Shown: positions 1 to 39,164, counted from the stretch's first letter. The stretch is 41,936 bases of DNA from Chlorokybus atmophyticus (GCA_009103225.1 RHPI01002949.1:1-41936); one strand, 5' to 3'. The notes: generated by a model from the letters alone, not told the origin. Numbers and translations are program-made.

Positions 1-2477
1 GTTGCAACTTAATCAAGGGGCATGAGAAGCATACGTTGGTGGAGGATGTTGGTCCACTCGATGGTCAGTACCCTAGAGAACTGTTTTGTCAACATGCCTT
101 CAGATCGCAAGCAGTGCCTCCAGATCTGGAGACCATTGTTCAAGATATCATTGAGGCTTGTGAGGGCCTGCCGCTTGCACTGGAGGTCGTGGGCTCCTTT
201 CTCCACACGCGCAGAAAGGGTGATGTGCAGGCTTGGAAAGACGCACTGTGGCGACTGCAGCAGGCAACCGCAGTGGCAGGTACAGCTGACAACAAGCTCT
301 GGGACAAGCTCAAGCTCAGCTACGACTACCTACAACCCGAGACGCAGCAAGTGTTTTTGGATATCTGCTGCTTTGCGTTGGGGAAGAGCAAGGACATGCT
401 GCTCCCAGCGTGGGGCGGGTCAGATGCGCTGAATTGCCTGGTGGAATGGTCCCTCGTTCGCTTAAGTGGAGCCCTGGATGATTGGTCCGAAGATCACCGA
501 GTCTTTGCGTTTGGTTTTATGACTCTGCGTCATGGCAAAAGTTCAATCCTTTCGGTGCATGACCAACTTCGGGACATGGGGCGAATGATTGCCAATTGTG
601 CCAACCCGCCTAGGCACATTTGGTCGCCAATGGCATTGAGCGCCAAATCCATGAAGGTGCTTGCAATGCCCACGTTCCGTCATGGTTCCTTCACCTCATG
701 TCCCGTTCTACTGGCCTGTCAAGGATTGCTGCTTGCATGCATCCAATGAGAACTTGCAATCCACGGTGTTCTAGGAGTGTGTTACAACACACTGGTGGAG
801 TGAACACGTGTGTATTGCTGTTCATTGCATTGTTGTTGCATGCAGGGCTTTGACAACGCCGAGACTATGTCCTGGACTGGTGTCAACAGGAGCCCACCAT
901 TGCGAGGCATGGCCTTCATGCCCCGCCTCCACATGCTGGACCTTGGCACGATTGATTGGGATGGCGAAGTTTACACTCACACTCTTGCGTGCCAACAACA
1001 AAGAGAAACAAGGAAGAAAGAAGGCTGCTGCGTGCGACTCTTGCGTGCAACTACTGCGTGCGACTCTTTCGTGCAACCAATCAGAAAAGCATTTTTCGTG
1101 ACCAAGTGGGTTTTAAAAGACCTGGTATATCTGGAGTGGAAAAGTGCGAGCTGTTCAGCCTTGAACAATTTCTTATGTAATGCCGCTGCACACACAACAT
1201 TGGTCGTCCTCATCGTACATGTGACCATCACCAGATTCAATGTCAAAAGGCTGCGGACTGAGTTCTTAGGAAACCTCAAGGAGCTGCAAGTCCTGGAGCT
1301 GCGGGTTTACCCCACTGGCAATTACAGACAGAACCGTCTAGTTCTAAAGGAGGTGCCTGTGCTTGGCGAGCTTACTAGGCTACAGGCTCTGCATCTCACT
1401 GCATGGCGTTTGAGCATGCTCCCCGAGTCTGTCAGCAAACTCGCCGAGTTGCAAGCGCTAGACCTGAGTATGTGCGAAAGCTTGGCGGCGTTGCCAGACT
1501 CCTTTGGTGAACTCTCTGAGTTGCAAGTTCTGGACCTGAGTTGGTGCAAAAGCTTGGCGGCGCTGCCGGAATCCTTCGGTGAACTCGCTGAGCTGCAAGT
1601 GCTGGACCTGAGTGGGTGCAAAAGCTTGGCGGCGTTGCCGGAGTCCTTTGGCAAGCTCGCTGCTCTGCAATGGTTGGACCTGAAGTTTTGCGACAGCTTG
1701 GCGTCACTGCCGGAGTCTTTTGGCAAGCTCGCTGCTCTGCAGGAGCTGGACCTGGAATTTTGCGACAGCTTGGCGTCGCTGCCGGAGTCCTTCGGCAACC
1801 TCGCTGCGCTGCAAGGGTTGGACCTGCGGGTGTGCGTAAGCTTGGCGTCGCTGCCGGAGTCCTTCGGCAACCTTGCTGCTCTGCAAAAATTGGACCTAAG
1901 CGGGTGCGTCAACTTGGCGTTGCTGCCGGAGTCTTTTGGCAACCTCGCTGCTCTGCAATGGTTGAACCTAAACTTCTGCCACAGCTTGGGGTTGCTTCCG
2001 GAGTCCTTCAGCAACCTCGCTGCTCTGCAAAGATTGGACCTACGCGCGTGCGTCAACTTGGCGTTGCTGCCGGAGTCTTTTGGCAACCTCGCTGCTCTGC
2101 AATGGTTAAACCTGAACTCCTGCCACAGCTTGGGGTTGCTGCCGGAGTCCTTCAGCAACCTCGCTGCTCTGCAATGGTTGGACCTGAACTCGTGCGTAGG
2201 CATGCCGTCGCTGCCGGAGTCCTTTGGAAACCTCGCTGCTCTGCAACAGTTGGACCTAACCGGGTGCATCAGCTTAGCATCGCTGCCGGAGTCCTTCGGC
2301 AACCTCGCTGCTCTGCAACAGTTGGACCTAACCGGGTGCGAAGACTTGACATTGCTGCCGGAATCTGTCAGTAGGTTGGCTCCTGCTGTTGTGGCTGTGC
2401 TGCAGCAGCACCAGCGGGAGGCGGCGGAAGAGGAGGAGGACGGAAGCAAGTCTGCTTCAAAGTCAGCTATTTATTGA
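1..2477 (+). CDS. NB-ARC-LRR (NLR) immune receptor with TIR-NLR-like NB-ARC motifs; 5'-partial. Exons <3..656 and 846..2477
   Basis: The frame is open from base 3. Motifs: RNBS-C (ELFCQHAF), GLPL (CEGLPLALEVVGS), KLSYDYL, RNBS-D (VFLDICCF), MHD (VHDQLRDMGR). A phase-0 GT-AG intron at 657-845 (AAG|GTGC...TGCAG|GGC) joins to the LRR exon, which ends at TGA 2475-2477. The N-terminal domain lies outside the window. Confidence 0.9.
1410..2378 (+). repeat. 13 complete plus 1 partial 72-bp (24-aa) LRR tandem repeats within the NLR
   Basis: The unit LxxLPESFGNLAALQxLDLxxCxS repeats, with the DNA core CTGCCGGAGTCCTTCGGCAACCTCGCTGCTCTGCAA nearly invariant. Confidence 0.95.
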
Positions 2478-2639
2478 TATATCAGTGCAATCGCAGCACT
2501 GCAGGAGCAGGACGGCAGCAAGTACAGCGATTGGGCGGCCTTGCCAGAATCCGTATGTGCTCGCTGGTATGTGCGCAAAGTATGTAGGCGGGTGAGGCAA
2601 TCGGCGCTGCAGGGTATGGTTGCCCCTCACCTTACCAGG
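2478..2639 (+). pseudogene. Degenerate LRR-like continuation in frame after the NLR stop codon
   Basis: The same frame after TGA reads YISAIAALQEQDGSKYSDWAALPESV, resembling the LAALQELDL...LAALPES unit. It ends at a canonical phase-0 donor AGG|GTAAGA at 2640. Confidence 0.45.
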
Positions 2640-2984
2640 GTAAGAGCGGCCGCACACACATGCTCATTTTGCACAGTTGCTCACATTTGTGTACACACAT
2701 ATGCTTACAGCAACACACGTCTTACAGACTGACTGGAAACTTGTGCGTTATGGCACAGGAACCAGCATGCACATGCGTACGCAGACCAATGCAAGCACGC
2801 GCATGTGCACATACCTTCTCCAACAAGGCTGACACGCGCTCACGCACGCAGCCACTTTGGTAGGTCGACCTACACGTACGAGTATGCATGCTGACTTGAA
2901 TACCTGCATGCACATCAAGATTCACAAACAACACTCAACGCAAGCACACCCACTCTAAGACACCGACCTACACATGTTGCTGAC

Positions 2985-5410
2985 ACTGCAGGCGATGGTT
3001 ATGGTGTTGAGCACCTGCTGCTGGTGTACTGGCTGTGATGGCTATTTGTCATGGGACCCACCCAATCGCTGAATACACCACCGGTGGCAAGGGTTGGTGC
3101 TCTGACTACAATGGCAGTCGCATCTCTTGGTCACCAATGGGTGGTCGAGGACTGTGTAGCCTTCCCACGCTGCAAGGAGCAGAGCAATCTGCGCAGAGGC
3201 GAACACATTTTGCAGCATCGCCAATGCTCGTCATGTTTGCTACGCTTTTGAGATTTGCATAGCAGTTGCTATTGATCAGGATCACGACTACGGCAAGGCC
3301 ACAGTCCTGCATCGATGGGCGCTGGCGAGTTCCAAAGCAAAGCTGGGGCTCATTGGCCCCGACACTGGCGCAAAGGCAGAGCATGTACGACGAGGTGAAC
3401 GCCCTTTCAGACAGACAGGAGTGATAGGCGCTGCCAGCCGCTTACCATGCCTGGCTGTTATTATTTACAATGTAAACGGTCATAGGCTCTAAGAGCTGTG
3501 CTGTTGCACGGCACCTGTAAGTACGGCAAATATGTGCCTGTTGCCATTCTGTCTGCTCATATCAAAGCAGACTAGGCAAAGAGGGTATGGAGAGTTATGT
3601 CAGGTTGACGGCACTTGCAATGATGCATTGTATGCTGATCGTGCTCGAAAACGTTGTGTCCAAAGGTTGCGCATGGAGTGACTAACATGCCCGGGCTGGT
3701 TATAGTATGAAACTACAACGAGTTGGTCGATTAATTCCGCTCGTTCACCCTTAGTGCCACTACCCAACAATGCTTGTTACCCGATGGGATCTGCTTTGTT
3801 GGGTAAGGCTATGTGACAAGCCATGCATCATTGGCTGACTATATAGTCGCTGCTAGGCGAGGCTATGCGCACTAGCCTGTCCTCTTGGTGCAGGCAGTGT
3901 GCCCAGCGAAGAAATGAAATAAATAACAAGCGTTTCGCGGAGCGGACGAGACAGCGCCGAGAAGCGCTGTTGCAGTCGATGGTGGATGCTGCAAATTATG
4001 TATTATTGCGTCGTATATCACTGCGGCTCTCTCCGCGCTGCCCTGTCAAGAAAATGATGGTTGGGTGGCTTCCTAAGCATGCTGCATCCATGCGAGCAAG
4101 CAAATTGGGTACATTGCTGAGACAGGCTACACTCGCAATTACAACACTGAGCATGATACAATTTTCAGGGATGCTGTCAGCTGCATGCGGATCTGGTGTT
4201 GCAGCGGAAGGCCAACAGCATGACACCCGTGCATTATGCATGTGTTGAAAAAACGCTGCATCCTACAACTTAACGTATACACATCCACTGCATCAATCAA
4301 AATTGAGCGCACCACTCATCCACACATGCAGTCCCCCACATACAATTCCACATGCATATGCTCTTCAGCCACACAGTCACAGACATGTACTCTCTCTCGC
4401 ACTGACACTCGCACACACTTCTATTCGTTGATACTCGCAGACTTGCACGCGATGACATATTCTCAATACACTCACCTCACACGCCCATTTGTGCAATCAC
4501 CCACCCCATGAACATGTCTTCTTAATCACACAAACCTGATCAGACCGCTGGGTGCATGCAAGTGTGGCCATGAGAGCATCAGAAGCGGCGGAGTGAGTGC
4601 CAACCTATGCTGCAGCGGTGGTGGTATGCCCACTGGCCAGGCGGCAAGAATGACGCCTACTTCATCCCACGGCGACGACCACAAGGCTGCCGCCGCCCCC
4701 GCCCACAAGGACAAGCCGATGATTATTGTCACCGGCAGCGCGACAAGATTTGGCGGCGACGGAGGCAGTGGGTTGAGGCGGGGTGACTAGCAACTACTGC
4801 TGTTTCCTTGGTAAATAGCAGAAGTCCACCTGCCGTCTTGCCATCTCTCTCTCGTTCATTCTTCCCCCCTTCTAACCTTTCTCTTCTCGCCCCCTTTTCA
4901 CCTTTGCCTTCTCCCCATGCTTTGTTGCTTTCTCGTGCATGCACGCCGCTGCACCCTGATTCACTGCTGGCTCTTCTGGTACGTCTACGCACACACCCAT
5001 TGTACACCACAGCACTTACACGCACACTCATGCACTTGGCTGCATGCGCGTGGCATGGCAGCCCAAGTGTCAAGCAGACAATCAAATCCGAGTTTCACCA
5101 CCTCAAGATCTTACAGATGCAATTCTGCAATGCAACCCATGCTTGCTCTAGGCGCCCATCGCTTGTCCCAAAGTGGTTGTCAATTGTCACTTGTCAATCA
5201 TCTGGATACATACAATGCACTTGAACGCACAACCTCCAGACATTGTGCCGCTTGTACTGTTTAGAAGTTTCCTATACCCACCGCATCAGTACACACTGTG
5301 CGTGCGCGTACTCGTGTGTGCGTTATGTACACAACTTAACTTGTATGCTTGGGAAACAAGAGCGATTGTACTGACTTGCACTTCACTTGTGAATGTTTAG
5401 AGGGGGCGCC
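2985..5410 (+). repeat. Diverged ~2.4-kb segmental duplication, copy 1 (copy 2 at ~18970-21280)
   Basis: Colinear matching blocks at an offset of ~15.8-16.0 kb. Examples: GGCTGACTA(TA)TAGTCGCTGCT 3834 vs 19738, CATGTGTTG(A/G)AAAAC 4239 vs 20040, CCGCCCACAAGGACAAGC 4699 vs 20589, TGTCAAGCAGACA 5067 vs 20953. Boundaries are approximate. Confidence 0.75.
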
Positions 5411-5451
5411 TTGACAAGTGTGTGTTGTGTGTTGTGCATTTGACCTTTCAG

Positions 5452-6637
5452 GTGATTGTTGCCTGTGATGAGCATTACGAACGGTTTTCACTGAAAGTAC
5501 CAACCGAGGATGACAAGATGGGAGCGGGAACGCACGACGAGTACACCAACATAGCGAACAAGGTTTACGAGGAGCAGAATCGCTCCGGCTGGTTGGTTCC
5601 GGTCATCTTCAAACCGCCCGGAGTGAGAAAGCATTTACCCGACGGGATTAGGAAGTTCAGCTACTTCACCCTTGGCGATCAGCAGGCAAGTTCACAAAAG
5701 AGTGGGTGTAGCATTTGCTCCAAGCTGTACACTTCTGTTTGGGAGACATGCGCTTGCAACATGCGCACAGTCACCTTGCATTGCTTGACAACTGCGCATC
5801 AGCAATCAGAGTGGTTTATTGTTTCCATCTTCGTGCACCAGGAACCCTGGGTTGGATATGACACCCTCGTGAATCACTTGGGCACTCTCCAAGCCTTCGT
5901 GCAGCCCATGCCATCACAACATAGGTTCGCATTGCGGCCTGGTTTGCATGTGTTGGCTTACCACATAACGCACGTAGTCTGAGTTCACTTGACTTTGCAG
6001 CGCTTCCGAGTCACCGCGAGTGGGCGTGCTTAGTGTTCCCGAGCTGCGGAAAAATGAGACAGAGCTTACTGACAAGTGGCGCAATGAGGTGCAAGACGCC
6101 ATGGACACAATACAAGCCTTCATGCAGACCTCGCCAGACTACTACGCCGACTTCAGAGCATATCGCGCTAGCGATGATAGCCAGCAAGAAGGGCCCTTGA
6201 AAAGAGTGGAGCAAGCACGCAGGTCAGACAACCTATGATGCATTGCAATATGAAGCCTTCACCTGATGGCCAAGTACTGATATGACCTCCGCACCAACAC
6301 GACATGACATGACAGGGTTCTGCGGGACTTCTGGCGTTCAGCATACAAATGGTACATGGATGGCATGTTGCCTCCTGACTTTTTCAGCAAGTCCAATGTC
6401 TGGTGTGCAAGAGGCAACACTTTCCGGCTGATGGTTGAGCCGATTGACATTGCCAACTACTATCGGCTCGAGCTGTGGAAGCAGTGGCCTGTTGGCAATC
6501 GACATTACCTTGAGGCAGACAGTCGGCCAGAGTACTACACGTTCTTGGAGCTGCAGTACGAGAAATATAACAAGACTGCTCCGCCGTCGTCAACACAGCG
6601 CGCATTGGACGAAATGGATGCCATCGAAGCAAAGTGA
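5452..6637 (+). CDS. SEFIR (TIR-fold) domain fused to an EDS1-type EP domain; 5'-partial. Exons 5452-5685, 5842-5924, 6001-6222, 6316-6637 (286 aa + stop)
   Basis: The SEFIR C-terminal half reads VIVACDEHYERF...GAGTHDEYTNIANKVY...LVPVIF...HLPDGIR..YFTL...GYDTLVNHL. The EP domain reads DYYADF...RRVLRDFW...MLPPDFF...W...GNTFRLMVEPIDIANYYR...HYLEADSRPEYY, matching the EDS1/PAD4 pattern GYYDSF..FWD..LP.DF..W..Y..LVEPLDIANY.R..Y...RP.RY. Intron phases 0, 2, 2 all match and the exon sum of 861 is divisible by 3. The upstream exon(s) were not identified. Confidence 0.85.
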
Positions 6638-6703
6638 TGAGTTGCAGTGCTTTGCTCTCATCTCGTTACAAAGTGTACTCCAACTTGTCCAGCGTAAATA
6701 ATG

Positions 6704-6929
6704 CGTGTGTGTGTGTGTGTGTGTGTGTGTTTATGTGGTTGCTGGATGTGCTCAGACTCAAGATCCGCATATATTTGCATGTGTGTGATTGCGTTTCTCC
6801 GTGTGCGCGCGCGCGCACACGCATGCCGCATACATGATCACCGGGCTAATGACACCCTACCTCTACGCCTACTGCCCCCCTGTTCATTATTCACCGTGCA
6901 TACAGCATGCTCAAGCACGCGCGCGCGCG

Positions 6930-7000
<71 letters not shown>
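6704..7000. repeat. Microsatellites: (GT)n at ~6704-6731 and a (GC)n(AC)n(AG)n run at ~6921-7000 abutting the gap
   Basis: Seen directly in the sequence. Confidence 0.95.
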
Positions 7001-7317
7001 NNNNNNNNNNNNNNNNNNNNNNNNNNNNNNNNNNNNNNNNNNNNNNNNNNNNNNNNNNNNNNNNNNNNNNNNNNNNNNNNNNNNNNNNNNNNNNNNNNNN
7101 NNNNNNNNNNNNNNNNNNNNNNNNNNNNNNNNNNNNNNNNNNNNNNNNNNNNNNNNNNNNNNNNNNNNNNNNNNNNNNNNNNNNNNNNNNNNNNNNNNNN
7201 NNNNNNNNNNNNNNNNNNNNNNNNNNNNNNNNNNNNNNNNNNNNNNNNNNNNNNNNNNNNNNNNNNNNNNNNNNNNNNNNNNNNNNNNNNNNNNNNNNNN
7301 NNNNNNNNNNNNNNNNN
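7001..7317. other. Assembly gap (317 N)
   Basis: Run of N. Confidence 1.
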
Positions 7318-10300
7318 GGGGTAAAGGCCGACTGCGCTGACACCATCAAGGGCTGTTGTTGTGGTGTGTTAGGGCTACAAGACTCTTGCAGCCACAACCC
7401 ATGCAAGAGAGCGGGTGCGGCACACTATAAGATGGGCTATTACAAACCAATTCACAATGATAACTTATACACATCTTCAAGACTACTGAATTGTCCAACA
7501 ACTAAGGCGCATCGTATCAATCAAATGTGTCAATATACCGGTAAGCCAAATCAATCCTCGGTTGGGTGATGAACTTGCAACTTGGGCAACACATCGTTCA
7601 AACAATCCAATAACCCTTCAGAACCTGGATCACATTCAGAATCGGGGTCGATCTGATGATATGTCCACGATTGTAGCAATTCGGGGAGGCGGGTTTCCCG
7701 GTTACCGCCCTGCACATTCCAAGAGAGAAGCTCACAGGGTTGCAGGCAATGCGATGGCAGCAGTACCACCTATAGCATTCAACGGCGTCTGCGCGATTGC
7801 CTTGGCGCTCGCATAGTTATTACACAAGCGCAACTGTTGTGACCATTCATGTGTAAGGAAACGAACCTTCAAGAACACTGGTACAAGCAGCGTTGCCTGC
7901 GTTGTGCTGGTTGAAAATCCTTGTGGATATCTGCAGCCATTCCACTGATACTCCGTGCCCATCATCATACGTGCTCGTGTTGTCCCGTTTGGCAATCTGC
8001 ACATAATCTGGATCTCCCACCACGAGAACCTGCACTGCATTTAGATGACCACAGAGCCGACATCACATACAATAAGTTTTCATGTTCGAATAAGGGACGT
8101 GTGCGCAAACCTTGGTGCCTTCCGCAAAACCCTGCGCAATAAACTGGGCCCATGCCATGGAATAAGGTTTTATCTGATCGATGACTACCTCAAATCCACA
8201 AGCATGTATCCTCCACGCAAGCTGAGACACCTGCACGTTTATGCAACCAGGAGGTGAGCTGATTGCATATATCAAGAGGACAATGCAGTTTTGTTCTCAC
8301 GGTTGGCGACCAGATCACAGAGGTGTGGCCTGCATTCAGTCAACCGTCAACAGTGACACCTTTTGCACGTGCGTCACGGCGCGTTGGCAATAAGACAAGA
8401 AGACCCGTTTATTCTCCAACCCGCCAGGAAGCTTGTAAATTCCGATTGAGATGTGTCCGAGTCGGGATCTATTTAGTAGCATCTGAATTCCCGTAGCCTC
8501 TCGGGAATATGCATTCGTGGGATAGCACCCTGCGCACCAAATACAATTAATGATACAATTGCGGGGCACTGAACGCCTTGAGTCTGAAAACAACTGTTTG
8601 CCCAATGGCAGTGACAGCAAGGGGTGTATGTGCGAGCGAACCAAGAACCAAGAAGACGATTAGTACGAGCCACCTGCCTTGATTGTGCATTTGGTTCAGC
8701 AGACATGTCAGCAGCTGCCACTGCCGCGCAACGGCATTCGCAACTGCATGTCCTTCCGCAGTTTGCTTGACGACATCAACACATTCAAATTTCCCACCGC
8801 CACTACCTGCAGTTCCACTAGCTGAGTCACGACAGTATCAACAAGCTTGCAATCGCAGGGGCCCCCCCTGGGGGGCCTTTGCAAGCAGTGTTTGTGCTGA
8901 GCAACTGCGTGATGCCTAGCGTGCACCACGCATTGGTGCGTTGAGTATTGGTTGGTCACGAGCATGACAGTTACAGGTGCAAAGATCTTGTAGCCTGCAG
9001 TCCCATATTTACTGGTTCAAGTCTCCAATGTGTCCTTATGCGGTTCCCAGTCCAAAAGCACTTGAAGATTGTACTTATCGCGCAGTGTTGCAAGCCAGTT
9101 GACTTGAATGGATTACGATGACAGACCGGTCAATCAGTCGCAAGCCAGCTACTCCTGTCTGGGTGCGGGAGAGATGGTAAGGTCCTCCTCGAGACGGCAT
9201 AATTGGCAATTGCAATGGCAATACCTGTTGAGCGTGTTCTGGACACGCTTAACAATGCGATAGGTATACAGTGCGTCCCAACACGGTGCTGTTGCTGTTG
9301 CTGTTGCTGCTGGCAGCATTGTTGCTATGTGCGGTTGTACCTGTTGTGTCTGTGCTAGTTTCTGCAAAGCAACACGTGGGCTATTGAGTGAACATGAGGT
9401 GCTCCAGGTAATCGGGGCGCAGGCATGGCATGGGCTCACAGGTGTGCATGATGCTGGCACACGCACTTAACCAATACAGTGCCAATTAGGTAGTGTGCGC
9501 ACTGACGTTGTGGTGCACAGTACCTTGGTAAACAAGGCAATGTGCACAACAAAAAAGGCAGTGCAGCATTGAGTTCTAGAAGACATGCCAAAAAGTTTGT
9601 GCACAGCATATGCAACAGCATGCCATACTGTTTGGTAAGCTGTGCTTACATGCTTGTATGTAGCCAATGCACTTGGTGTAGATTGTGTGCAGTCCGACTG
9701 AGCTCACTGCGGTTCAATGAAGACAAAGGACTGCTTTTATGCGTAGCAGATCTAACTAATGCATGTCTTGAAGGAATACACAAAGAACGACAGCATCTGT
9801 ATATAGCACGTGTATGCAGCAATATGCACACATTGGTATGCTGTGAGTCTGCAGGTGTGTACATGTGCAAACACCTGCAGCCTGATTGTTCGATTGGGCT
9901 CCTGACGCTGCTTTGGATATGGCCGCCAGTTCTGGCCCGCTGTGACTGTCATTCCCTGCCGTGGAGCTGATTATACATCGCAAGTCCACCATGGTGACGG
10001 TCCCAACAGCGGCCGCAACAGCGACGACCACAGGGTGTAGCATCATGACGGATGCGGCAAACGCCGCATCAAAGGCAACGCATTGACTGACCATGAACGC
10101 ATTGCGCACCGTATCCTGCTTATTGTGCCTTGACTTGTAGTGCCTGTGCGCGCACAAATGCATCAGAGCACTCAACGCGTGACAGCCATTCGTCACCACT
10201 TTGAGGGTGATCCCACATCAGCAAGCAACTTACACAACAGGTGCATCATCGAAAGCAGCTGCCGCCTCTTCTTTCATAATGAGGCTGGCAACAGCTCCAA

Positions 10301-13572: not shown

Positions 13573-14880
13573 CTAAAATACTAAGTAACAGTGCGCGCAT
13601 GTTGGCATGTCACAGAAGAAATGTTGCACATTACAACTGAGCACAAGCTCCAGAGCACAAGCTCCTTCAAGTGGCACCTGTGGATTCGAGCTCACTCTTA
13701 AACTCTTCCAACTTAGCAGTACAGTTTTCCAAGTTAAAATTTGGCTCTCAGAGGTTATGCTCTTCATCATAACCCAGCCACTTTACAAGGTACTCTGTTT
13801 GGAAGCCCTTGATAAATCTCCCGAACCGCTTGCCAACAATGGCTTCCGATCTCATACTCAAGGTCGCCCTCCACCTCAACAGGAGGTGGAGGTGGCTGCA
13901 TTCTACCATTACTCTTGTATGGTTTGAGCAGCGCCTCATGAAACACATTGTGGACACGCATGCTCTTTGGCAATTCAAGCCTAAAGGCTCGTGTTCCCAC
14001 AGCTGCAGAGACAGTGAACGGCCCAAGCCACCTGGGCAGGAGCTTACGTACACCACTAGTTTTGAGCCCAATGTTTCTGGTGCTGAACAAGACCTTGTCC
14101 CCAACCTTCAAACCCTCTCCAGGGCTGCGCTGCCGATCAGCATACATCTTATGCCGATCTTGAGCTGCTCTCAGGCAGACTTTGGCACTAGCCAATGCAC
14201 CGTGTATCTGCTCTGTCAAGTCTCTAGCTGTAGGCACTTTGCAAAACGGCTGAACTTGCAGAGACATAGGCGTCACATGATGCCTAACATAGTTCAAACA
14301 GAACGGAGTGCTATGCAGTGATCCTTGCCATGCATTGTTCACCGCAAACCAAGCTAATGCCAGGTGCAAATGCCTGTCATTAAACCTGGGTGAAGTGTAG
14401 TGTCGCAACACGTCTTCCAACACCTGGTTTGCACTGTCGTGCCTTCCCTCATCATGGCATGAACTCGTCGTAAACCACCTACAAGTTGTCATGCATGTCC
14501 GCATGCTATTGTACACCATGAGACCATGTCATGCTGTCTCACGCACTATCTCTCGACATATGGTAGACACACATATGAAAGATGCGTGTCACCACCCCCT
14601 GCAGCTGAGCGCCAACGCCCTCGTGCGCCTGCAGCTGACTCACACGCTCATCGCGTAGTCCTCGTACACGCCGGACAGTACCATGCTCCATCAGGGATCT
14701 CCTCAAGTGGTGGACGAAGGCACTCCATGTGCTAACCGGCAACACACCTGTCGCATAGTAGCATGGTGTCCCAACCCTCTGAAAGAAGCGTGTCCCCTTG
14801 CAAAAGGTAGGCAAGACGATCACAACTTGACTTGCAATCAACTGTTCACTCGTGTAGAGCAGTCCAAACTCAATCCTCAC
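13573..14880 (-). mobile_element. Decayed Ty3/Gypsy chromovirus: integrase C-terminus and chromodomain, with frameshifts
   Basis: KLLPRWLGPF...AFRLELPKSMRVHNVFHEALLKPY (GPF motif) is followed in another frame by EAIVGKR...TEYLVKWLGYDEEHN (chromodomain). Confidence 0.85.
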
Positions 14881-18969: not shown

Positions 18970-21280
18970 CTTGCAAGACGACATGTATATACTGGAGCAC
19001 CCGGTTGCAAAACGCCCTTCTATGTGGTGTGAAGAAACTTGGTACGCGACCGTCTGTTCGCAGTTGTTTGATTGCGCACATAATCTAACACCAGCTGACT
19101 TTTGTGCAGATCGTATTATCATACAAGAGCGACAAATGCAACAAGGCCTATGTGGAGTTTTGTGCTGCTGTAGACCAGGCGCATGGTGATGTCTTCAAAG
19201 AGATAGACCTTGAGATTTAGATGCATGTTGAAGGGAGCTTCTGGTACCAATACCAACTTGACGAAGCTGTAGTAATACCTGTTACGCCCTTCTGAGCCAG
19301 TTTGCATAAGGCAGTTCTGCGAGTTTCCGAGCCCGAACGCTTAAGAGTTGTTCGCAGTACTAGACCGTGCACGTCCAGCCACTGATCCATGATTAGATCT
19401 CTTAATGACACACAATTTCTATCCCGCATGCCTCGACAAGGTTGAGCGCAGACTGCTACACCCATAGGAGCGCAATTATACAGCCTAACAAGTGCTGTGA
19501 CAAACGTTACACAGCCCCAATGTGGCTTTCACATTCTGCCAGTTGCTCTCTGGCTGTGCGTTCACACAGTCCAAACAACGCTCTTCACGGCGTGTACACT
19601 AGGTGTATATCGCGGGCCGCATGGTGACGACCAAAATAATTGGTGTGCATGCAACCGCATCACCCCTGTCACAGGCTACCAACATTTTGCACAGCTACTC
19701 TCAGTTCGTTGAGGCTATCCAAAAGCGAAGCAACACTGGCTGACTACAGTCGCTGCTGCGGCTATGCACATAAGCCAGTCCTGTTGCTGTAGGCTTGGTG
19801 TAGGCTTGTTGGTGTAGGCAGAGTGGCCAGCGCAAGAACTATTCACAAGGCACGAAACACACGCTGGGAATGCTGGTCGAGTCTGTCACTTGAACATTTA
19901 CTGTACTTGGCATGCTGCATCCTTGGGAGCATGACGCAAGCACACAATGCAAACACAGCATTGAGCATGGTAGACGTAACGGTGCTGTCAACTGCATGCG
20001 CAAATGGTTGGCCTGGGGAAGAGCAACATCAAATACTAGCATGTGTTGGAAAACGCACCCTTCACATACTACATACATAGCATAGACAAAACCACTAACT
20101 TAAGACTCAAGCGCTACACGCTACCACTGAACATTCACACATGCAGTTATGCACACACAGCTCTACGCGCAAGTTCTCCAACCACACTCTCACAGACGTG
20201 TATACGCTCTCTCACTGGCACGCTCATGCACTCTCACTTTTACTGGCTCATATTCACAAATTTGCAGGCATTCTCTTCAACACACGCCCAGCAAGCAGAA
20301 TCCGCCAACAATGTTTTGCGACAAGACATGCATGTCCGCTCAAACGTACTCTTTTAACAGACAATGATGACTATAATAAGGAGAACTTTGAGGAGTGCAG
20401 ACCAGCTGTTTGCGTGCAAGTGGGGTTGAGAGAATGAGACGCAGGAGAGGGAAGGCGGAAGCAGCGGAGTGGGAGCCAAACTGAGCTGCATCAATGCTGG
20501 TAAGGTGGAGGTGGAGGAAGCCACCGGCCCGGCGGCGAGAATAACGCATGTTTACTCCACGGCGATGACAAAAAAGCTGCCGCCGCTCCCGCCCACAAGG
20601 ACAAGCTGATGATGAGCCTAGTGGCTTAGTTATCATCAGCGAGACAGGGTTTGTTGGCGGCGGCGACGGCGGCGCATGAGAAGGAGGCAGTGGGTTTACG
20701 CTAGGTGTGTGGCAATTACTGCTGATTTTCATGGTATGTAGCAGACTCAACCTGCCGTCTTTCCATCTCTCTCTCCCGCCCCCAATCCTGTCTATTGCTT
20801 TCTCGTGCATGCGCATTGCTGAACCTTCATGTGTGCTGCTGTCTCTCTTAGTACACACATACACACGGTACACCACCACAGCCCTTTTGCAAGCATACGC
20901 ATGCGCGCTCTTAAACACACGCACCTGCCTGCATGCGCACTGGCAGTTGTAATGTCAAGCAGACAGCAAATCTAAGTCGCCGACTCTCAAGAAAACAAAT
21001 TCAATCCCATGCTTTCTCTGGGCCCCATTGCTTGTGGTAAGTCTAACCGTCACTGATTACTAATCTGGACTGGGTACCTTCGCACTTGTACGCACTACCG
21101 CCAAACATTGTGCTGATTGTACTGTGTGGGAGTCTCTTCTACCCGCATTAGTACACATTGTGCACGTGCGAGTACAGTGCGTGTTGCCTACATGACATAT
21201 TATGTGTACTTGGGTAGCAGCATTCATTCACAGCATTCACCAACAACTGCACATCACGTGTGCACGACAAAGGGGGTTGA
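18970..21280 (+). repeat. Diverged segmental duplication, copy 2 (copy 1 at ~2985-5410)
   Basis: Same colinear blocks as copy 1. Both copies show a donor-like site at the equivalent position (TTCCTTG|GTAAAT 4811 vs TTTCATG|GTATGT 20734). Confidence 0.75.
19110..19295 (+). pseudogene. Possible decayed TIR/SEFIR N-terminal exon
   Basis: After a TTTTGTGCAG acceptor it reads IVLSYKSD...YVEF...DVFKEID..*..GSFWYQYQLDEAVVIPV, loosely like VFISYS.D...V...DV.LD...W...QL.EA..VI.V. It has one in-frame TAG. The match is weak. Confidence 0.25.
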
Positions 21281-24099: not shown

Positions 24100-24815
24100 A
24101 TGGCTGAACCAGTGCCTCCCTGGCCCAGCATCCTCGCCTATCTGGTCGGCTTGCTCGGGTTCTTGTTTGGACTGTATGCTTCTGTGCGCAACAGGGAAGA
24201 TGCTCGAAACAGGCAGGCAGCAGAGCTGTCTATGAAGTACAATGGTCTTGATGACGCGATGGATGTTAGCAAGCAGTACCAGGACGAACAGGACTACTAT
24301 GTTGGCTTAAAAAGAACCGGCCACCACAGATTGAGAGAGCTCGGGGTAAAGTGAAAAACTTTTGGGATCGGGTTACAACGCAGTACGAGCGCGGTTCCAG
24401 CCCAGAGGACATTCTTTCTTCAACAAGCGACTGGCTCGCAAGAGGCAACAACTATCGGTTGCTGGTGGAGCTCATCGACATTGCCAGCTGGTATTCTCCA
24501 AAGGGTGCAAATTTTTATGCCTCCACCGGCAAGCATTACCTTCGTCTCTCGGTTGCTGAGGCTGTTGTGCGGCCGCGGCGTTATTACCTGCTGGAGCAGG
24601 CATACCGCAATGCGTACCCTGAGAACACTAAGAGCTCAGTCGACTACGCACTGAAGGAGCTCGTCATTGCTGGGGTGAGAGGGGCCCGGAAACCTGATGA
24701 TGACCTCAGGCAGGAGGCTCATCGGCTCTCCGATGAGAAAGCGGGAACATCAACGTCACTTTGCAAGCTGTCAAGGAGGATGAGGCTCATTTGGGTAGTA
24801 ATCCTATCTCTCTGA
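24100..24815 (+). CDS. Intronless single-transmembrane + EP-domain gene with one frameshift at ~24345-24354 (pseudogene or assembly error)
   Basis: The N-terminus has a hydrophobic helix (PSILAYLVGLLGFLFGLYASV), then DDAMD...QDYY. After the shift it reads VKNFWDRV...SPEDIL...DWLARGNNYRLLVELIDIASWY...KHYL...RPRRYYLLEQAY, colinear with the EP domain at 6001-6637. CAG|ATG at 24100 could also be a splice acceptor. Confidence 0.75.
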
Positions 24816-26929
24816 CTGTTGAATCCACCTCGCACTTGCCAATCTGCGAGGCAGTGAGGACACATAGTAGCCTTTGTGCGAACAGTTTCAACACGTAGAT
24901 ACTTATATGAGATGCACATCGACTGCTCGTGTGCATGCATATAATGCAACCCAATATGCGTGTACAGCATGATGGTCATTGGCATCCAAATAACATGCCA
25001 TTTAACGGTGTATGGATAAGGGTGGGGCAAACGTCAGAGCTGAGGTAGTTAATAGATTGGTGTGAAATGTGTTCCAGCTTAGTGATTGCGACAATGATAG
25101 CTGAAGATGATCTGCCATGTCATGCCTTGGCAACAAGTATATGCAAAGCATATTGCAGCAAGCAGTCATTTGGTGAGCAGGTGCACAGCAGGTGCACCTG
25201 CTGACCAAGTGCTGCCCGTTGTTTTGCACATAAGTCCAAGGATGCCTGACAAAACTTTCTCGTACTTAATGCACCACGTGTTGGTAGTGAGCGTGTCCGT
25301 GACCATGTGGGTGTAAGAGTGCGTGTCCTAGAGTCTTGTGCTGATGGCTGTGCGTGTGCTTGCTGTGCTGGTGTGATGTTGCTTTGCTTGCAAAAACCAC
25401 TGGAAAGCCTATAGTTGAGCATGACGCGCTACACAACCGGTGTACATATGTCTAGAGTGGTAGGCAAGTCTGCACGTGTAGAAGCATTTGTTTACAAAAC
25501 ATGACAACTAGAACCAACTACCTCAACTTCTCATAAACCATGTTAAGTACGTTGTGTAGTCGTGCGTCCCCGCCCCCAGTGCATCAGCTGCGGTCGGCTC
25601 CTGAATGAAAATCGCTCATAATGCTCATCACACAACCACGATCACCTAAACCATAATGAGAACAGCTGCGATTTGCAAATCACAGCATGCATTGCTATCA
25701 TGCAGACGTGCCTGCTTACTACATAAAATGCCAGAAGTTGGGGTTTGTTGATGACAGCGACTATGCGCAAGGTGTTCACCACCAGTAATAATGTGACAAG
25801 TGCTACCTTTGTGCCGGCAGCATTCAGCATTTGTAATGAAAGCCGGCCATGACTTGTACTGGTTCTTGAAGTCCACAATGACGTCTATGTTGTCTTGTTG
25901 CAGTTGCTCGGCAAGTCCCCGCGCTCTTTGTGTTGGTTGTCGAACTGGCAGCAGCTGATGATTGCTGTCAATGTTGCCGCTGGCGTCGCGGACAGTGCCC
26001 TTGTTGCCTCTCGTCCCTGCCCGCTACTTGCCACAGCACATGCGAAATGTAACAAGCATGGAACAGCGTTTGTTGCAACAGGAATGCTCTGCAAGCTTTA
26101 CAAGAAAATCGTAGTCGTAGTTGAACTTACACAGAAGCAGCATTGTAGGAGCGGCCAGTTGAAATATGTGTGGTTCCAGTAGCCGGCGCCAGTGACAATG
26201 GATGCTGCCGCAATTAGCACTGCAGGCAGCCTTTGAAATACTTGTCTACGCATCTCAAGCAAGCGCTTCTGCTTCTGCTGCTAAGCCAAGCGCGGTGCAG
26301 GCCAGCCTTACAATGGGTGCAATGCGCCCAACTCTTGTCAAGGTTTCAGTTCAGCGATAGCCATGTCAGCACCAACCGAGTGTATAGCTGCGGAATAACA
26401 CAGCACACTGTCGACTGGTGGTAAGACGCTGTGTACCATGACAACTGACATGGCAAGCTTCCAAAGTAGTACTAGTAGTTATAGCATGTCAAGTTGTAAA
26501 CTTCTACTCTCAAAAGTGCACATAAGCTCGCAGAACTGAGCAGTGCATGTGCATTTGTGGCGGCAGCGGTCAAGTTCATGTCCATGTCGTCGTCATTGTC
26601 GTCATTGTCGTACTGCTAGTGACGGAGTTAACACGACGGCGGCACTGCAGGTACTGCGTCACATTAGCGTCAGCGTCAACCTGCGTGTGCTGCTGTGTCG
26701 TCAGTCGGTCAACGCCTCTGCCGCCGCTGCTTGCGCCTAGCTTGCATTAGGCCCCTACCTGATTAGCCCTCTTGCGTACATAGGTTGATAATGATGTTTC
26801 TTTGCTGGCTTGGCTGGAGTGTTTGCATCCGCATGTTGCGCATGCGTGGCACAGCCTATTGATGCTCCGCATTGGAAGCAAAGGAAGGAATATTGCTGCA
26901 CAAGAAGTTACCTTTGCTATTGGGTCCTG

Positions 26930-28489: not shown

Positions 28490-29199
28490 TCAAGGTGTGG
28501 CAATGTTCTCCTTAGCGCGCGGGCCCACCTCGTCCTTGTCTAGCCCCACCTGCTCTGCGTGCTTCTGCGGCGGGTGCAGCATGTCCAGCAGAGTCTGCTC
28601 CCAATCCTTGGCAGGACCCTGGACAACACCACAAACACACAACTCAGTACAGCTCTGCATATTAGGAAACCAACACGCGTGCACACGCGCACACAGGTAC
28701 ACACATGCGCATATGTGTCTGTAAGCGTGCATGCTCACACACACTCACACGCGCATGAAGGGGAGGGGGGGGGGGGGGGGGGGNCACACGCACGCGATTG
28801 TGCACACACGCATGATCGCGTGCGCATATGCAGCTTGCAAGCATGTGTGTGCACACATGTACACACACGCCTGCGCACGCAAACCGCGCGTTAGTACACA
28901 TACCTTCCATGACAGGTCCTGATTCATGCACGCGTATCTCATCCTTTCAAACTGCGTCGTGCCGAACACGGACAGCAGCGCGCGTTTTGTGGCTTTGACG
29001 ACAGCATCAACATCAGCAGGATGCACGGTCTCGCAATCCACGTCGAAGCAACCCATCTGGAAACCGGTCACGCCCTCGCGCACCGTGTCGGCGAGGCCGC
29101 CAGTTGTCACCACCATGGGGATGGTGCCGTAACGCATGGCGTGGAGCTGGATGAGACCGCACGGCTCGAAACGCGATGGCACGAGCATGTAATCGGCAC
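28490..29199 (-). CDS. GBSS: Granule-bound starch synthase, last two exons only (29199-28904 and 28618-28490)
   Basis: It reads [26 protein letters not shown]...[18 protein letters not shown]...QDLSWK|[11 protein letters not shown]...AKENIATP*. The intron between the two exons has GT-AG ends, and the upstream exon has an AG acceptor at 29200. Upstream exons were not found; there is a single-N join at 29817. Confidence 0.9.
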
Positions 29200-29328
29200 C
29201 TGCGAGGGAGGGGTCAGTGATAAGCACACATGAGCGTGTGTGCATGTGTGCGTGTTGTGCGACCACATGCGTGCGTCCGCCAGCGTCCGCGCATCTGTAT
29301 ATGTGCGCATACATGCATGTTTGTGCGG

Positions 29329-29516
29329 GTGGGTTTGCGGGTGGGCGTGTGCATGTGTATGTGTGTTCACATGCATCCGCAGACACACGTGTGTGCGTGC
29401 GTGCGTGTGCATGCAGATGGCTGTGGGTTTGCGGGTGGGCGTGTGCATGTGTATGTGTGTTCACATGCATCCGCAGACACACGTGTGTGCGTGCGTGCGT
29501 GTGCATGCAGATGGCT
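29329..29516. repeat. 2 x 94-bp tandem duplication in the TG-rich intron upstream of the GBSS exons
   Basis: GTGGGTTTGCGGGTGGGC...GCAGATGGCT is repeated at 29329 and 29423. Confidence 0.9.
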
Positions 29517-32010
29517 GCACGTGTGGGTGGGTGCATGCATGCGCGTGCGCCACAATCAGGGCAAGAGCTCGCAGACAAAACAGTTGCCCAAACATGAGAC
29601 GGGAGTGGTAAGTTTGTGTATAGATGTTTTGGATGAAACATAGAGAACCTGGTCAGCAAGGAGAGTGTAATCACATACTGCGTCAACTCTGCTGAGCACT
29701 GTTCCTGTTATTGCTGTTGAACTCTACTGTGCAAGATCGTCGTCACATGCAGGGGGGCTGTGTCGTATGCATAACCTGACTACAGCTGATATCCCCCCCC
29801 TCCGGGGAGGGGGGGGNTAAGGTTGAGTTTATTACAACAGAAGCGGACTGTACATGACTATTAAGTTCATCAGTTACAACTTGCGCGACAGTTTTTGCAC
29901 TGCAACTGCACCAATGTTGAAGTAACCACTACTGTTTCTGCCCGCTGTAACAATATTGACGTTGACAGCAGAAAAATTGCACATGCTCAGATACCATAGC
30001 AGGCTTGCCGTAAGTCGCTGCTGCACGCAACGAGCTGAAGTACTGACTGGCTGCAAGCAGCACGCATGTCAAAGAGTTGTATGTGAAGATGTGTTTGTAT
30101 GTATGTGTACACGCGCGTGCACATGTGTGTGTGCATGCATGCGTCTGTGCACGTAGACGCATGCATGCACGAACACGCACGGGCGCTTATCAGCCTGTGT
30201 GCGGTACAAATGCTGATTTACGAGCTGTGAAGTTGGTTCAGCTAGACAAGCTTTGTGGAGCAGGCAGCAATGGCGAGGCATTGCAGAGCACCTGCAGAAG
30301 GCCGAAGCTGTGCTTGCAGCTGTAGCCATCTGCGTCAGAAGGTCGACGTTATTCCTCCAGCTGGCAAGTGCAAACCAGCGCCGCCCAGCAGTGCTGAGCG
30401 GCGCTGTCCGCTGTCAGCGCCATGACGAAGCTGGCGCCTGCTGCGCTGCGCTTCACACCACCCGCCCGGACACCCCTTCCAACCCGGCGGCGGACAAACA
30501 CTGCAGCCCGCCCGCCACCGCCTCACCGCACCGCTCCGTGCCGTGCCGCCGGCAAATCAAGCAAACAAGCTGCTTGTTACAAGCATGAGCATGTGAATTG
30601 ACAAGATGTGCGCCAGAATCCTCCGGCCCAGGGTGGAGCCCGGGGCTGGCGCAGTAGGCGTGAGCTTGCTTGATGCATGTGCAGGCATGACGTAACTTGA
30701 AACCACATCATGCACATGACACTAATCCGGGAATTGATACCGGTATTATGGTAGGCCTTAAAGGGTTCGGGAGACCTACCATACTACATGACCAGCTATA
30801 CGACGCGGTTTTCATGACAACTTTGTATAAGCCTACCGGTAGCACTGTTACCGATCAGGGTGGGTAGGCTGTATTTGGCGCCTGATTCATGGATGATGTC
30901 ATGACATTGTTGATGCGTGACAGGTTCGACTCCGTTCGTCTTGTTCACTGATCTGGATTTGCACGCTGCGGCACTTTGTCACGGTACCTGGCTCCGCGAG
31001 GCCTCAGCGGGCGGCATGGACACGACCAGAGCAAGCGCTGAGCAGCGGCGGAAGGCGCGAGGGGCGACGACGACGCCCGACACAAGCTGGAGGCGGACAA
31101 GCACGTTGGAAGGAAGGAAGCAAAGCGCAGCTGAAGCCTGACTTGGACCGCACGGGGCGAAGGTGCGTTGCCGTTTCTGGTCGTTTGCTCGCCGCTGGCT
31201 GTGGCAAGCAAACATGCCAGAACAGCATGAATGCCAGCTAGCTAGCCACATGCAGGTAAGCGATGCAATGCTTGACAGACATGCATGTCACGGTTGTGCA
31301 AGCTAGCGGTGCTGGCGCTGGACGGCAGCGCCATGGCAGGAAATAAACTTGGTTACATATTGTCGAAGCGCATGCGCAAGCGAGAGCACTATACTGATAT
31401 GAGTCTGTCATCGCGCTCGGCCGCAGCCTCATTACAAATACCCGTTTGAGGCGTTGCGTGGAGAGAGTCAAACTCACGTGCAGCCGTGTTTGGTTGTTAG
31501 TGCACTTACTTTTGTGCTTGCTTGGTGCATTGTCAAGACTTGAGTATGGAGCATTTGCGGCTAGCGACTTACGCTTCACCAACACACGCATCATAGCTTT
31601 CTATCACAAGTCTGCAATTAGTGCATTGCTATTCCGCTGGCAAGCCGCACCGCGCAGTTGTGCTAACTCAGCAGCAGCATATACATGTGCGTGTCTGGTG
31701 CGCACAGGCGTTACAAGCTCGTGACAATTCTTGTCTCACTGCAGGCTAGCGAGGGGGAGCCGGCTTTAAGGTGGTAATGGCCGCAGTCGCCGTTGAAGAG
31801 CTCAAAGGTAAGCTGGCGAACAACACATGCAGTGCTTCTCAAGATGTGCTTGACATGCAATTGTGGGTCGCCAGTAGTGGTCAGTGCCAATGCTGCACCA
31901 CTTGTACCGTGTACAAGCCAGCCAAAAAGGTTGTATACTCTGAATGTCATGTATTCCATGAGTCGCACTCACCTCGAACCTGCTTAAATATGCGCATGTT
32001 GCACAGTGTA

Positions 32011-32553
32011 GATGAGTCAATGACGTCAAACACCTTGCTTTGCCCTGGCTGTGACAATTTGCTGAGCCATAGAGGGGACGTTGAGAAGAGCTTCGTTTAT
32101 TATCTGAATGACTTACTCAACCGAGCAGAATTGACCTGCTTCGTGGATGAGCTCAACTTGCAGCCCGGGGAAGAAGGCTGGTTTGTGATTACCGCCAATG
32201 TACGGTCCGCTCGCATCAAAATGCCTGTTTTGTCGCGTGGCTACGGGGACTCCTAGTACTGCCTGGAAGAGCTGCGCATCATGATGGAGAATTCAACAAA
32301 CATCGTCATGCCTATCTTCTTTGACAACAAATTTAACAAGCTGAAGGCCACAATTTAGAAAAGTATTAGCAGGTGAGTAGATTCTCCCTGGACCGTCATT
32401 TATCTTCCAAGTAGCCATGTTCCTGGTTACAAACATGTTTTGTGTCTTTAGGGCATGCCTGAGTGGTAAGCAGGAATATGTTGAAAAGGAATCTGCATAC
32501 CGTGGTGCGCTTGATAAAGCATTTAAAAACACAAGCCTGAAGCTCGAGAATAA
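32011..32553 (+). pseudogene. Plant-type TIR domain gene with two in-frame TAG stops (exons ~32011-32372 and 32452-32553)
   Basis: It reads LLSHRGDVEKSFVYYL...CFVDELNLQPGE...VLSRGYGDS*YCLEELRIM...VMPIFFD...TI*KSISR|ACL...SAYRGALDKA. The stops are at 32254 and 32356. There is a phase-2 intron GTGAGT(32373)...TTTAG(32451) and a further donor GTAAGT at 32554. The 5' boundary is approximate. Confidence 0.8.
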
Positions 32554-37348: not shown

Positions 37349-37380
<32 letters not shown>

Positions 37381-38522: not shown

Positions 38523-39164
38523 TGTAACGATGCTCGTGCTCACATACACAGCACACAAGTTATACAACACATGTGTGCAGCTGAGCACAATCTTCACACC
38601 GGAACCTTGCTTTCACTCGCGCACGCACGCACGCGTCGAGCGCGGCCACGCACACGAACACTACTACTTCTCACGCCAAGCAAGAACGCAGCAGTGTGCC
38701 TTGGACCACAACTCCCTCAAGCATGCACCAGCATACTCACAGCAGAGAGCAGAAAACAAAGTTGGTTGCATTACACAGGGTTTTTCTATTTATACAAGCA
38801 CTAGGAAGAAATAGCCTAATTAACAGGCATTTCATTATTCACTACCAAATCTAAAGGCAGGTCCAAGTGCAGGCTCCCCGCCACGCGCGTTGGGCCTTTG
38901 GCGGCTGTGTGACTGTGCAGTCCGCGTCACCTGGCACTGCACAGCGCGTGTCCAGTCAGCGGCTGTGTCACAACCGCGTGGCAGGTGGGTCACGTCGCCG
39001 AATTAACTGCTGTCGAGCAGGTCGCAGGCGAGTCGCGCGCGGCAGCAGGGGCAGGCGCCACATGGGCTTAATAAAGCTCATAAAAGCCCTCATCAAGCCA
39101 GCAAAAAAGGCAAAATAAGTACTTTATGTACAATAAAATACAAAGAATGCCCCAGGCTGTTACA
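38523..39164 (-). mobile_element. 3' LTR (642 bp) of the downstream chromovirus
   Basis: The termini are TGTAAC...GTTACA. The minus-strand PPT GGGGGGGAAGGGG directly precedes TGTAACA at 39164. Confidence 0.8.

Follow-up and report, generated by a model that had tools for sequence, protein, structure and literature searches.

Our analysis shows that Chlorokybus atmophyticus, a green alga that branched off early, carries a small family of proteins in which a SEFIR domain of the bacterial-defence type immediately precedes a short EP domain without a lipase part, of the type known from the plant immunity hub EDS1, and that the gene Chrsp249S03837 is a member of this family. Judged from its exons and the DNA around them, Chrsp249S03837 is a truncated member: the exon or exons that encode the N-terminal half of its SEFIR domain are gone, and the part from strand C onward remains together with the EP core. 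The reading that we prefer, and to which we assign a probability of about 65%, is that of a truncated SEFIR-EP family member whose EP-only product may be functional. At best, the gene would encode an EP-only protein and at worst it would be a remnant.

The domain architectures differ among the members of the family. The proteins P0002 (Chrsp103S01043) and P0077 (Chrsp235S03603) consist of a hydrophobic N-terminal helix, a complete SEFIR domain and an EP domain, in that order. Protein P0003 (Chrsp114S01646) has the architecture LRR-SEFIR-EP, and protein P0004 (Chrsp5S06985) has the architecture EP-TIR-SEFIR'-EP. The full-length paralogues are 62-88% identical to Chrsp249S03837 over the C-terminal half of the SEFIR domain, the linker and the EP domain, and they differ from it in that their SEFIR domain is complete, whereas that of Chrsp249S03837 is present from strand C onward. 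An earlier note on this DNA had proposed a Rosetta-stone fusion of a TIR-type enzyme with the EP domain in a single protein. This proposal holds for the family, as represented by P0002, P0077, P0003 and P0004, but not for Chrsp249S03837 itself, since strands A-B are absent upstream of it. The genes of the family were observed to be clustered with NLR, TIR and EP-only genes.

The window, by which we mean the whole stretch of DNA that was analysed (41,936 nucleotides), is of eukaryotic character, with approximately 50% G+C, microsatellites, short introns and one assembly gap. A word-indexed search identified, as an additional member of the family, the 381 aa protein P0078, which represents Chrsp249S03837 of C. 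atmophyticus in the Chlat1 annotation in EukProt and matches the window exons residue for residue. Because P0078 matches all four exons, the window carries Chrsp249S03837, or more precisely its 3' part. Spliced together, the four exons amount to 861 nt and 286 codons, with the phase kept throughout. The four in-phase exons and the 286-aa peptide of the earlier note were thus reproduced when the frame was recomputed, and all splice sites were found to be usable.

The exons and introns are all located on the plus strand. Exon 1 (5452-5685) encodes the C-terminal part of a SEFIR domain of the bSEFIR type, as indicated by the in-frame ORF, the PADLOC bSEFIR profile and the alignment to P0002 and P0077, and it contains strand C (VIVACDEHY), the GAGTHDEY motif and strands D-E, in that order. 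The acceptor of this exon at 5450/5451 is also the point at which the RNA contigs start, and the frame that spans exons 1-4 has its first ATG at 5518-5520, from which a protein of 264 aa would be translated. Intron 1 (5686-5841) is of the GC..AG type and is delimited by loose ends of RNA contigs at 5686 and 5839, which give GDQQ|EPWVGYD as the joined form of exons 1 and 2; the public model P0078 reads through this intron, which is retained. Exon 2 (5842-5924) encodes the linker between the SEFIR and EP domains, based on the alignment to P0078 and on the RNA joint 5922>5999, which corresponds to intron 2 (5925-6000, GT..AG). Exon 3 (6001-6222), also supported by RNA joints, encodes the initial long helices of the EP domain, with the EDS1_EP match on P0078 starting at residue 247. 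After intron 3 (6223-6315, GT..AG), which was likewise seen as an RNA joint, exon 4 (6316-6637) encodes the EP core and ends with the stop codon at 6635-6637. This exon was identified by Pfam EDS1_EP, phmmer and tblastn, and contains the motifs FW, LPPDF, VEPIDIANYYR, HYL and RPEYY.

Each of the three junctions was present in contigs from public RNA runs, those between exons 2/3 and 3/4 as joints and that between exons 1/2 as matching loose ends. Comparison of the RNA with the window at 95% likeness revealed differences at fixed sites, and at 100% likeness the matching contigs end at these sites. The diagnostic bases of Chrsp249S03837 are 5585C, 6183A, 6566T and 6629G, and the residues change from the window to the RNA from Ser to Phe, Gln to Pro, Tyr to His and Ala to Ser, respectively. 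As the states in the RNA are those of P0001 (Chrsp258S03871), the junctions are shown through the transcripts of this near-identical paralogue, which is 96% identical in the EP domain, likewise begins at strand C and is the copy actually seen in the RNA. At site 5585 in exon 1, all RNA contigs have T, which is the P0001 state. No contigs with the diagnostic bases of Chrsp249S03837 were found among the contigs of the public RNA runs, but since Logan contigs lose rare variants the missing copy-specific RNA is weak evidence. A total of 14 differences separate the window copy from the paralogue-type RNA (9 synonymous and 5 nonsynonymous), and the same comparison for the EP exons gave 8 synonymous and 3 nonsynonymous differences. 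These splits, which are based on small numbers, suggest that the EP part has been under coding constraint in at least one of the lineages.

The identification of exons 3-4 as an EDS1-type EP domain is robust, since profile, sequence and fold matches all point to it. Exon 4 alone matched Pfam EDS1_EP (PF18117) with an E-value of 3.1e-9 and 37 bits, as compared to a cutoff of 23.1, and P0078 matched the same profile with an E-value of 2.2e-10 and 41 bits at profile positions 16-115; overall, the coverage is restricted to profile positions 16-122 of 211, corresponding approximately to the first half. Searches of the window by tblastn with the EP parts of plant EDS1-family proteins recovered exon 4 at E-values of 1e-9 to 1e-10. 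In a phmmer search with the EP part against the PDB sequences, AtPAD4 (7xey_B, E 2.3e-5) and OsEDS1 (E 1e-4) were identified, and SAG101 and Arabidopsis EDS1 were also matched.

The structure model was obtained for P0002, a full-length paralogue that is 88% identical in exon 4, using an alignment of 78 rows. Residues 241-415 of the model, including the helices at 246-322, form a seven-helix bundle with pLDDT >90. A Foldseek search of this model against the PDB returned EDS1, PAD4 or SAG101 chains as all of the top 15 matches. By VIA-align, the model was superposed on OsEDS1 396-560 with a Z-score of 19.2 and an rmsd of 1.6 Å over 157 residues, and on AtPAD4 292-464 with a Z-score of 16-17, as compared to a Z-score of 10 for the next unrelated match. 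The helical-bundle core is common to the EP domains of seed-plant EDS1, PAD4 and SAG101 (4nfu, 7xey, 7xjp and 8zf0), with Z-scores of 15-19 and rmsd values of 1.6-2.4 Å over approximately 155 residues. The motifs FW, LPxDF, VEP(I/L)DIANYYR, HYL and RPxxY are shared between these proteins and the algal EP domain, and the structural alignment to PAD4 shows 26-28% identity. The EP domain claimed in the earlier note was thus confirmed by the Pfam profile and by the fit of the paralogue model to rice EDS1, although it is a short EP domain. It stops at the equivalent of EDS1 residue 560, such that approximately 60 C-terminal EP residues are absent; the full-length EP domain of EDS1 spans residues 385-623 of the 623-residue protein, of which the structural alignment covers only 396-560.

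The residues of the ligand pocket were compared in the sequence alignment only. By this comparison, the EDS1 residues K478 and R490 are kept in the algal EP domain, whereas H476 is replaced by Leu and R493 by Tyr. In the PAD4 pocket, K379 and K380, which we take to be ligand contacts, are replaced by Asn and Val, respectively, and F387 is replaced by Thr. The PAD4 ligand residues named in the paper on the plant complex are R314, Q318 and F387. A check of the PAD4 numbering confirmed that F387 does fall on a Phe, and R314 is located outside of the aligned stretch.

The proteins of the EDS1 family have a lipase-like N-terminal domain of the alpha/beta-hydrolase type, on which the heterodimer helix is located, whereas the Chlorokybus family is without it and has a SEFIR domain joined to the EP domain instead. 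No credible match to a lipase-like domain was obtained in the 42-kb window in tblastn searches with three plant lipase-like domains, and no match to Pfam Lipase_3 was obtained in P0078, P0002 or P0077. The observation in the earlier note that no lipase domain is seen is in agreement with these results, and the upstream lipase exon that, according to that note, would have refuted its reading was not found in the tblastn searches across the window.

The SEFIR domain of exon 1 had been recognized by eye. Exon 1 alone had no match in Pfam and this call therefore required further support; P0078 had no match to Pfam SEFIR at E-values of up to 1. Residues 40-122 of P0078 matched the PADLOC bSEFIR profile with an E-value of 5.4e-4 at profile positions 93-168, which are the only positions of the profile that Chrsp249S03837 retains. 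The E-values for the same profile were 3.6e-21 for P0002, 1.6e-22 for P0077 and 6.6e-17 for P0003. From strand C (VIVACDEHY) on, exon 1 is approximately 85% identical to P0002 and P0077, both of which matched Pfam SEFIR (PF08357; 41 and 38 bits, respectively) and also passed TIR_2. The PADLOC bSEFIR profile, which represents the bacterial defence system made up of a single SEFIR protein (Bacillus SEFIR, PDB 5y8e/5y8f), matches the SEFIR domain of the family (E ~1e-21) far better than do Pfam SEFIR and TIR_2. The family profile also matched the Bacillus cereus SEFIR structure 5y8e with an E-value of 8e-5, with VFISY, ViVaCD..Y and GxGT aligned, and both the phmmer and the family profile alignments to 5y8e extend only up to the GxGT motif. 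The nearest clusters in the ESM Atlas were bacterial SEFIR/TIR_2 proteins, with a score of 0.95. By these profile and alignment criteria, we assign exon 1 to the C-terminal portion of a SEFIR domain of the bacterial-defence type, within the TIR superfamily, consistent with the proposal in the earlier note. When the P0002 SEFIR region was used as the query in a word-indexed search, only the Chlorokybus family was retrieved.

The model of the SEFIR domain in P0002 was poor, with pLDDT values of 30-80, and displayed an order of elements (b-a-b-a-b-a-b-b-a) that fits the fold. The matches of this model to the SPARTA TIR, 5y8e, RRS1, SARM1 and the IL-17R/Act1 SEFIR domains had Z-scores of 8-9 and were inseparable from matches to CheY-like folds, and hence the SEFIR call rests on the sequence profiles. 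The Glu of THDEY in the GTHDEY motif, which the earlier note put forward as a candidate for the catalytic Glu of TIR domains, is invariant in five members of the family. It is positioned in the P0002 model at the start of the helix at 150-164, after strand C, where the pLDDT is below 50. Alignment of the family to three TIR domains by hhalign included strands A-B only, with a probability of 0.4%, and in the alignment to 5y8e the Glu of the bacterial GTE sits 2-4 residues upstream of the Glu of GTHDEY.

A kinship between the EP domain and the C-terminal half of bacterial bSEFIR was suspected since the match envelope of P0002 reached residue 367. It was rejected because the algal and plant EP parts alone gave no PADLOC match at E-values of up to 10, and because the SEFIR part alone retained the entire PADLOC score. 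The likeness to bacterial bSEFIR is confined to the SEFIR domain.

We analyzed the region upstream of exon 1 for the missing part of the SEFIR domain, which in P0002, P0077 and P0003 begins approximately 55 residues ahead of strand C. The spacer at 2478-5451 on the plus strand is partly transcribed and spliced, with RNA joints at 2638>2758 and 2858>2991. The N-terminal half of the SEFIR domain (strands A-B and helices A-B) was not found in this spacer by tblastn with cut-offs of E 1e-2 and E 50, as no match had an E-value below 0.1. An upstream exon on the plus strand at 4604-4810, the 5' end of which is approximate, is likely to be non-coding. It was identified from an RNA contig of run X2, in which 58 nt that resemble 4753-4810 are placed directly ahead of exon 1. 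The exon has a good donor, TTG|GTAAAT, at 4810/4811, but in the frame of exon 1 it is interrupted by a TGA at 4784-4786, and the version in X2 has an in-frame TAG. A 68%-identical copy of the exon and its donor is located at 20458-20775. The N-terminus of the public model P0078 consists of 43 residues from two small exons (~2615-2638 and ~3280-3384), the sequence of which is unrelated. With either start, at the ATG at 5518 (264 aa) or as in the 381-aa model, the product is without strands A-B and helices A-B.

Another RNA contig, from run X1, contains 163 nt ending with codons for VGQMFKDGTK, the stretch with which helix B ends in P0003 as well, joined to exon-1-like sequence of at least 95% identity. 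This junction indicates that the missing part of SEFIR is a separate exon in the relatives. The exon boundary of the relative, GTK|VIVAC, is at the same place as the start of exon 1, as seen in one transcript. A 30-mer derived from X1 was absent from the entire window with up to 3 mismatches allowed.

Upstream, the 3' portion of an NLR gene is located on the plus strand (36-2477), in which Pfam identified the C-terminus of the NB-ARC domain at 36-749 (E 4e-10) and LRRs at 810-2477 (LRR_14, E 3e-44), with the stop codon at 2475-2477. Over 64 residues, the last LRR and the tail of this protein share 44% identity with the LRR-linker of P0003 (E 9e-10). Downstream of Chrsp249S03837, a second lipase-less EP gene was identified at 24100-24815 (EDS1_EP, E 4.6e-9), with a frameshifted SEFIR pseudogene on the minus strand at 25541-26232 (tblastn) converging on it. 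A TIR exon was found near 32050-32253, and retrotransposon ORFs at 34-41 kb. The coexistence of truncated, pseudogenised and NLR-adjacent copies in one window suggests a family in flux, in which EP-only derivatives come about through exon loss.

The location of an NLR gene 3 kb upstream on the same strand, with a tail homologous to the LRR-linker of P0003, makes a broken unit the simplest origin of Chrsp249S03837. The unit would have been of the NLR-SEFIR-EP or SEFIR-EP type, and the linker and the first SEFIR exon would have been lost or replaced. In the full-length members, the SEFIR domain may act on NAD+ or oligomerise, coupled to the EP module; bacterial SEFIR has been found to deplete NAD+ (bioRxiv 10.1101/2024.02.11.579819). 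With half of the SEFIR fold missing, cleavage of NAD+ by Chrsp249S03837 is not expected, and the loss of half of the flavodoxin-like fold, which when complete has five strands (A-E), would make both binding and cleavage of NAD+ impossible, such that the protein would not be a producer of the signal. If translated, it may serve as an EP-only partner or damper by pairing with the EP domain of full-length SEFIR-EP or NLR-SEFIR-EP relatives. The EP core of EDS1-PAD4 and EDS1-SAG101 is a seven-helix bundle, which pairs to hold TIR-made, ADP-ribose-derived nucleotides. Pairing between EP domains without the lipase-like domains that drive heterodimer formation is pure conjecture. The altered EDS1 and PAD4 ligand residues and the missing part of approximately 60 EP residues would, as far as can be judged from the alignments, count against an EP-only function.

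It is possible, albeit less likely, that Chrsp249S03837 is a dead remnant, that is, a pseudogene piece of an NLR-SEFIR-EP or SEFIR-EP gene from which no protein is made and which may be transcribed perhaps only as the 3' tail of the NLR transcript. The absence of the N-terminal half of SEFIR, the in-frame stop in the upstream exon and the RNA contigs without the copy-specific diagnostic bases are consistent with such a remnant, and the frameshifted SEFIR copy at 25541-26232 and the retrotransposon ORFs across 34-41 kb suggest that Chrsp249S03837 could be dead too. However, the four-exon frame is open over its 286 codons and the splice sites are intact, and the comparison with the nearest paralogue, with a ratio of 9:5 synonymous to nonsynonymous differences, is suggestive of constraint. 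Moreover, P0001 is expressed although it is truncated in a like manner, and the loss of rare variants from Logan contigs reduces the weight of the missing diagnostic bases.

It is improbable that the NB-ARC-LRR and SEFIR'-EP parts form one gene as in P0003, the product of which would be an NLR with an EP tail. The two parts share the strand at a spacing of 3 kb, spliced RNA extends beyond the NLR stop codon through the two joints in the spacer, and the tail of the NLR shows homology to the P0003 LRR-linker, all of which would fit a single gene. However, the stop codon at 2475-2477 is located within an RNA contig that covers 2462-2638, no open frame links the NLR gene at 2477 to exon 1 at 5452, and no RNA joint was seen from the exons at 2400-4100 to 5452. 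Improbable as well is a complete SEFIR-EP gene with a first SEFIR exon that is located far upstream, mis-assembled or trans-located, such that the fusion holds also for this copy, because the X1 junction that favours it may be a bridge between paralogues in contigs built from 31-mers, the X1 30-mer is not in the window, the upstream 5.4 kb are gap-free and taken up by the NLR gene, and all exon 1 RNA carries 5585T, the base of the paralogue.

Returning to the preferred reading of a truncated family member, the match of the EP core (Z 16-19), the covalent SEFIR domain in the sister genes and the clustering with NLR and TIR genes make the algal proteins a testable candidate for an old link between TIR/SEFIR and EP domains. 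It is conceivable, although we regard it as doubtful, that Chlorokybus has a pathway without lipase domains that preceded, or runs parallel to, the TIR-to-EDS1 pathway of seed plants. In this algal pathway, bSEFIR or TIR domains would make NAD+-derived nucleotides, short EP domains paired by EP-EP contacts would read them, and truncated copies would be kept as EP-only partners or regulators for the SEFIR-EP and NLR-SEFIR-EP receptors of full length. The truncated copies would then resemble PAD4 and SAG101, which partner EDS1. In plants, pairs of EP domains bind TIR-made nucleotides (bioRxiv 10.64898/2026.05.20.726525). The EP domain has been regarded as an invention of seed plants, with EDS1 absent from non-seed plants and, in green algae, no more than 'short EP-like sequences' (bioRxiv 10.64898/2026.05.20.726525; PMC9806590; PMC10834447), a view that provides no account of how TIR signals would be read outside of seed plants. 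No report of the SEFIR-EP architecture was found in the literature searched.

The occurrence of the EP domain outside of seed plants, as suggested in the earlier note, is evident from the host, which is Chlorokybus. When 1.84 billion representatives were searched by phmmer with exon 4 as the query, 76 matches were obtained, the best of which were proteins of C. atmophyticus. An EP domain was found in 75 of 78 scanned sequences, the majority of which are short EP-only proteins, and SEFIR/TIR_2 was found among these 78 sequences in the Chlorokybus members only. Most of the other EP-only matches derive from metagenome or Logan contigs. The EP-only proteins of chlorophytes, such as KAK9825429.1 of Elliptochloris bilobata, differ from Chrsp249S03837 in being without a SEFIR remnant. 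An Elliptochloris protein carries the automatic UniRef name 'EDS1 EP domain-containing'.

The window contains a second lipase-less EP gene, located at 24100-24815 on the plus strand and identified by a match to EDS1_EP (E 4.6e-9). The frame starting at the ATG at 24101 encodes a hydrophobic helix, PWPSILAYLVGLLGFLFGLYA, whereas the EP part is read in a different frame from approximately 24351, past a TGA codon at 24352-24354. The change of frame and the TGA imply that the gene is interrupted either by a very short intron or by a frameshift. As in EDS1, an arginine is retained at the position equivalent to the plant ligand-pocket residue R493 (RPRRY).

The probable 5' non-coding exon preceding the truncated SEFIR-EP gene (4582-4853, plus strand) is present twice, donor site included. 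Its other copy lies at 20458-20775 on the same strand, and the second EP gene follows approximately 3.3 kb downstream of that copy. The two copies are 68% identical and differ by indels with lengths that are not multiples of three. The duplicated segment looks like a leader exon or a promoter module common to the family.

Convergent with the second EP gene is a SEFIR pseudogene at 25541-26232 on the minus strand. A hydrophobic helix at the N terminus and strands A-C of SEFIR are still present, of the type found in P0002, a full-length Chlorokybus paralogue (45-60% identity). The sequence is nevertheless disrupted by at least two frameshifts and by internal stops, and its version of the motif, GAGTHD-Y, has no Glu.

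A TIR exon is located at 31771-32256 on the plus strand (TIR_2, E 1.4e-4, ORF residues 98-161), and the TIR part follows a Cys-rich stretch of the same ORF that weakly matches zf-4CXXC_R1. In the NCBI assembly GCA_030012885.1, the gene for an EP-only protein, P0021, lies approximately 4 kb from a TIR-domain gene with an SxWCLxEL motif (the pair at 1469-1972, minus strand, and 6001-6732, plus strand, of L003), and thus the EP-TIR gene neighbourhood may extend outside Chlorokybus.

Between the NB-ARC-LRR gene and the truncated SEFIR-EP gene, an RNA contig from the public run X1 covers 3798-4044 and 4605-4670, with position 4041 joined to 4604. The CT..AC ends correspond to a minus-strand intron of the GT..AG type, and the RNA depth is very high across 3786-4093. 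This spliced RNA may be transcribed antisense or originate from a repeat. Approximately 60 bp downstream of the stop codon of the truncated SEFIR-EP gene, a stretch of (GT)n, (CG)n, (CA)n and (GA)n microsatellites starts a tract (6700-7318) that ends in an assembly gap of 318 N at 7001-7318, and thus the 3' UTR and terminator are incompletely assembled.

Visual inspection of other long ORFs suggested LTR-retrotransposon parts at 13767-14519, 34225-35232 and 39160-41181 (minus strand) and at 35876-38149 (plus strand), including an integrase with a chromodomain-like tail, an RNase H-integrase and a gag-like protein that combines a CCHC knuckle with repeats rich in Asn and Gly. In the ORF at 28745-29686 (minus strand), also read by eye, one stretch resembles the motif-bearing C-terminal region of starch or glycogen synthases; around it, (CA)n-like DNA is translated into low-complexity sequence rich in His, Thr and Ala.
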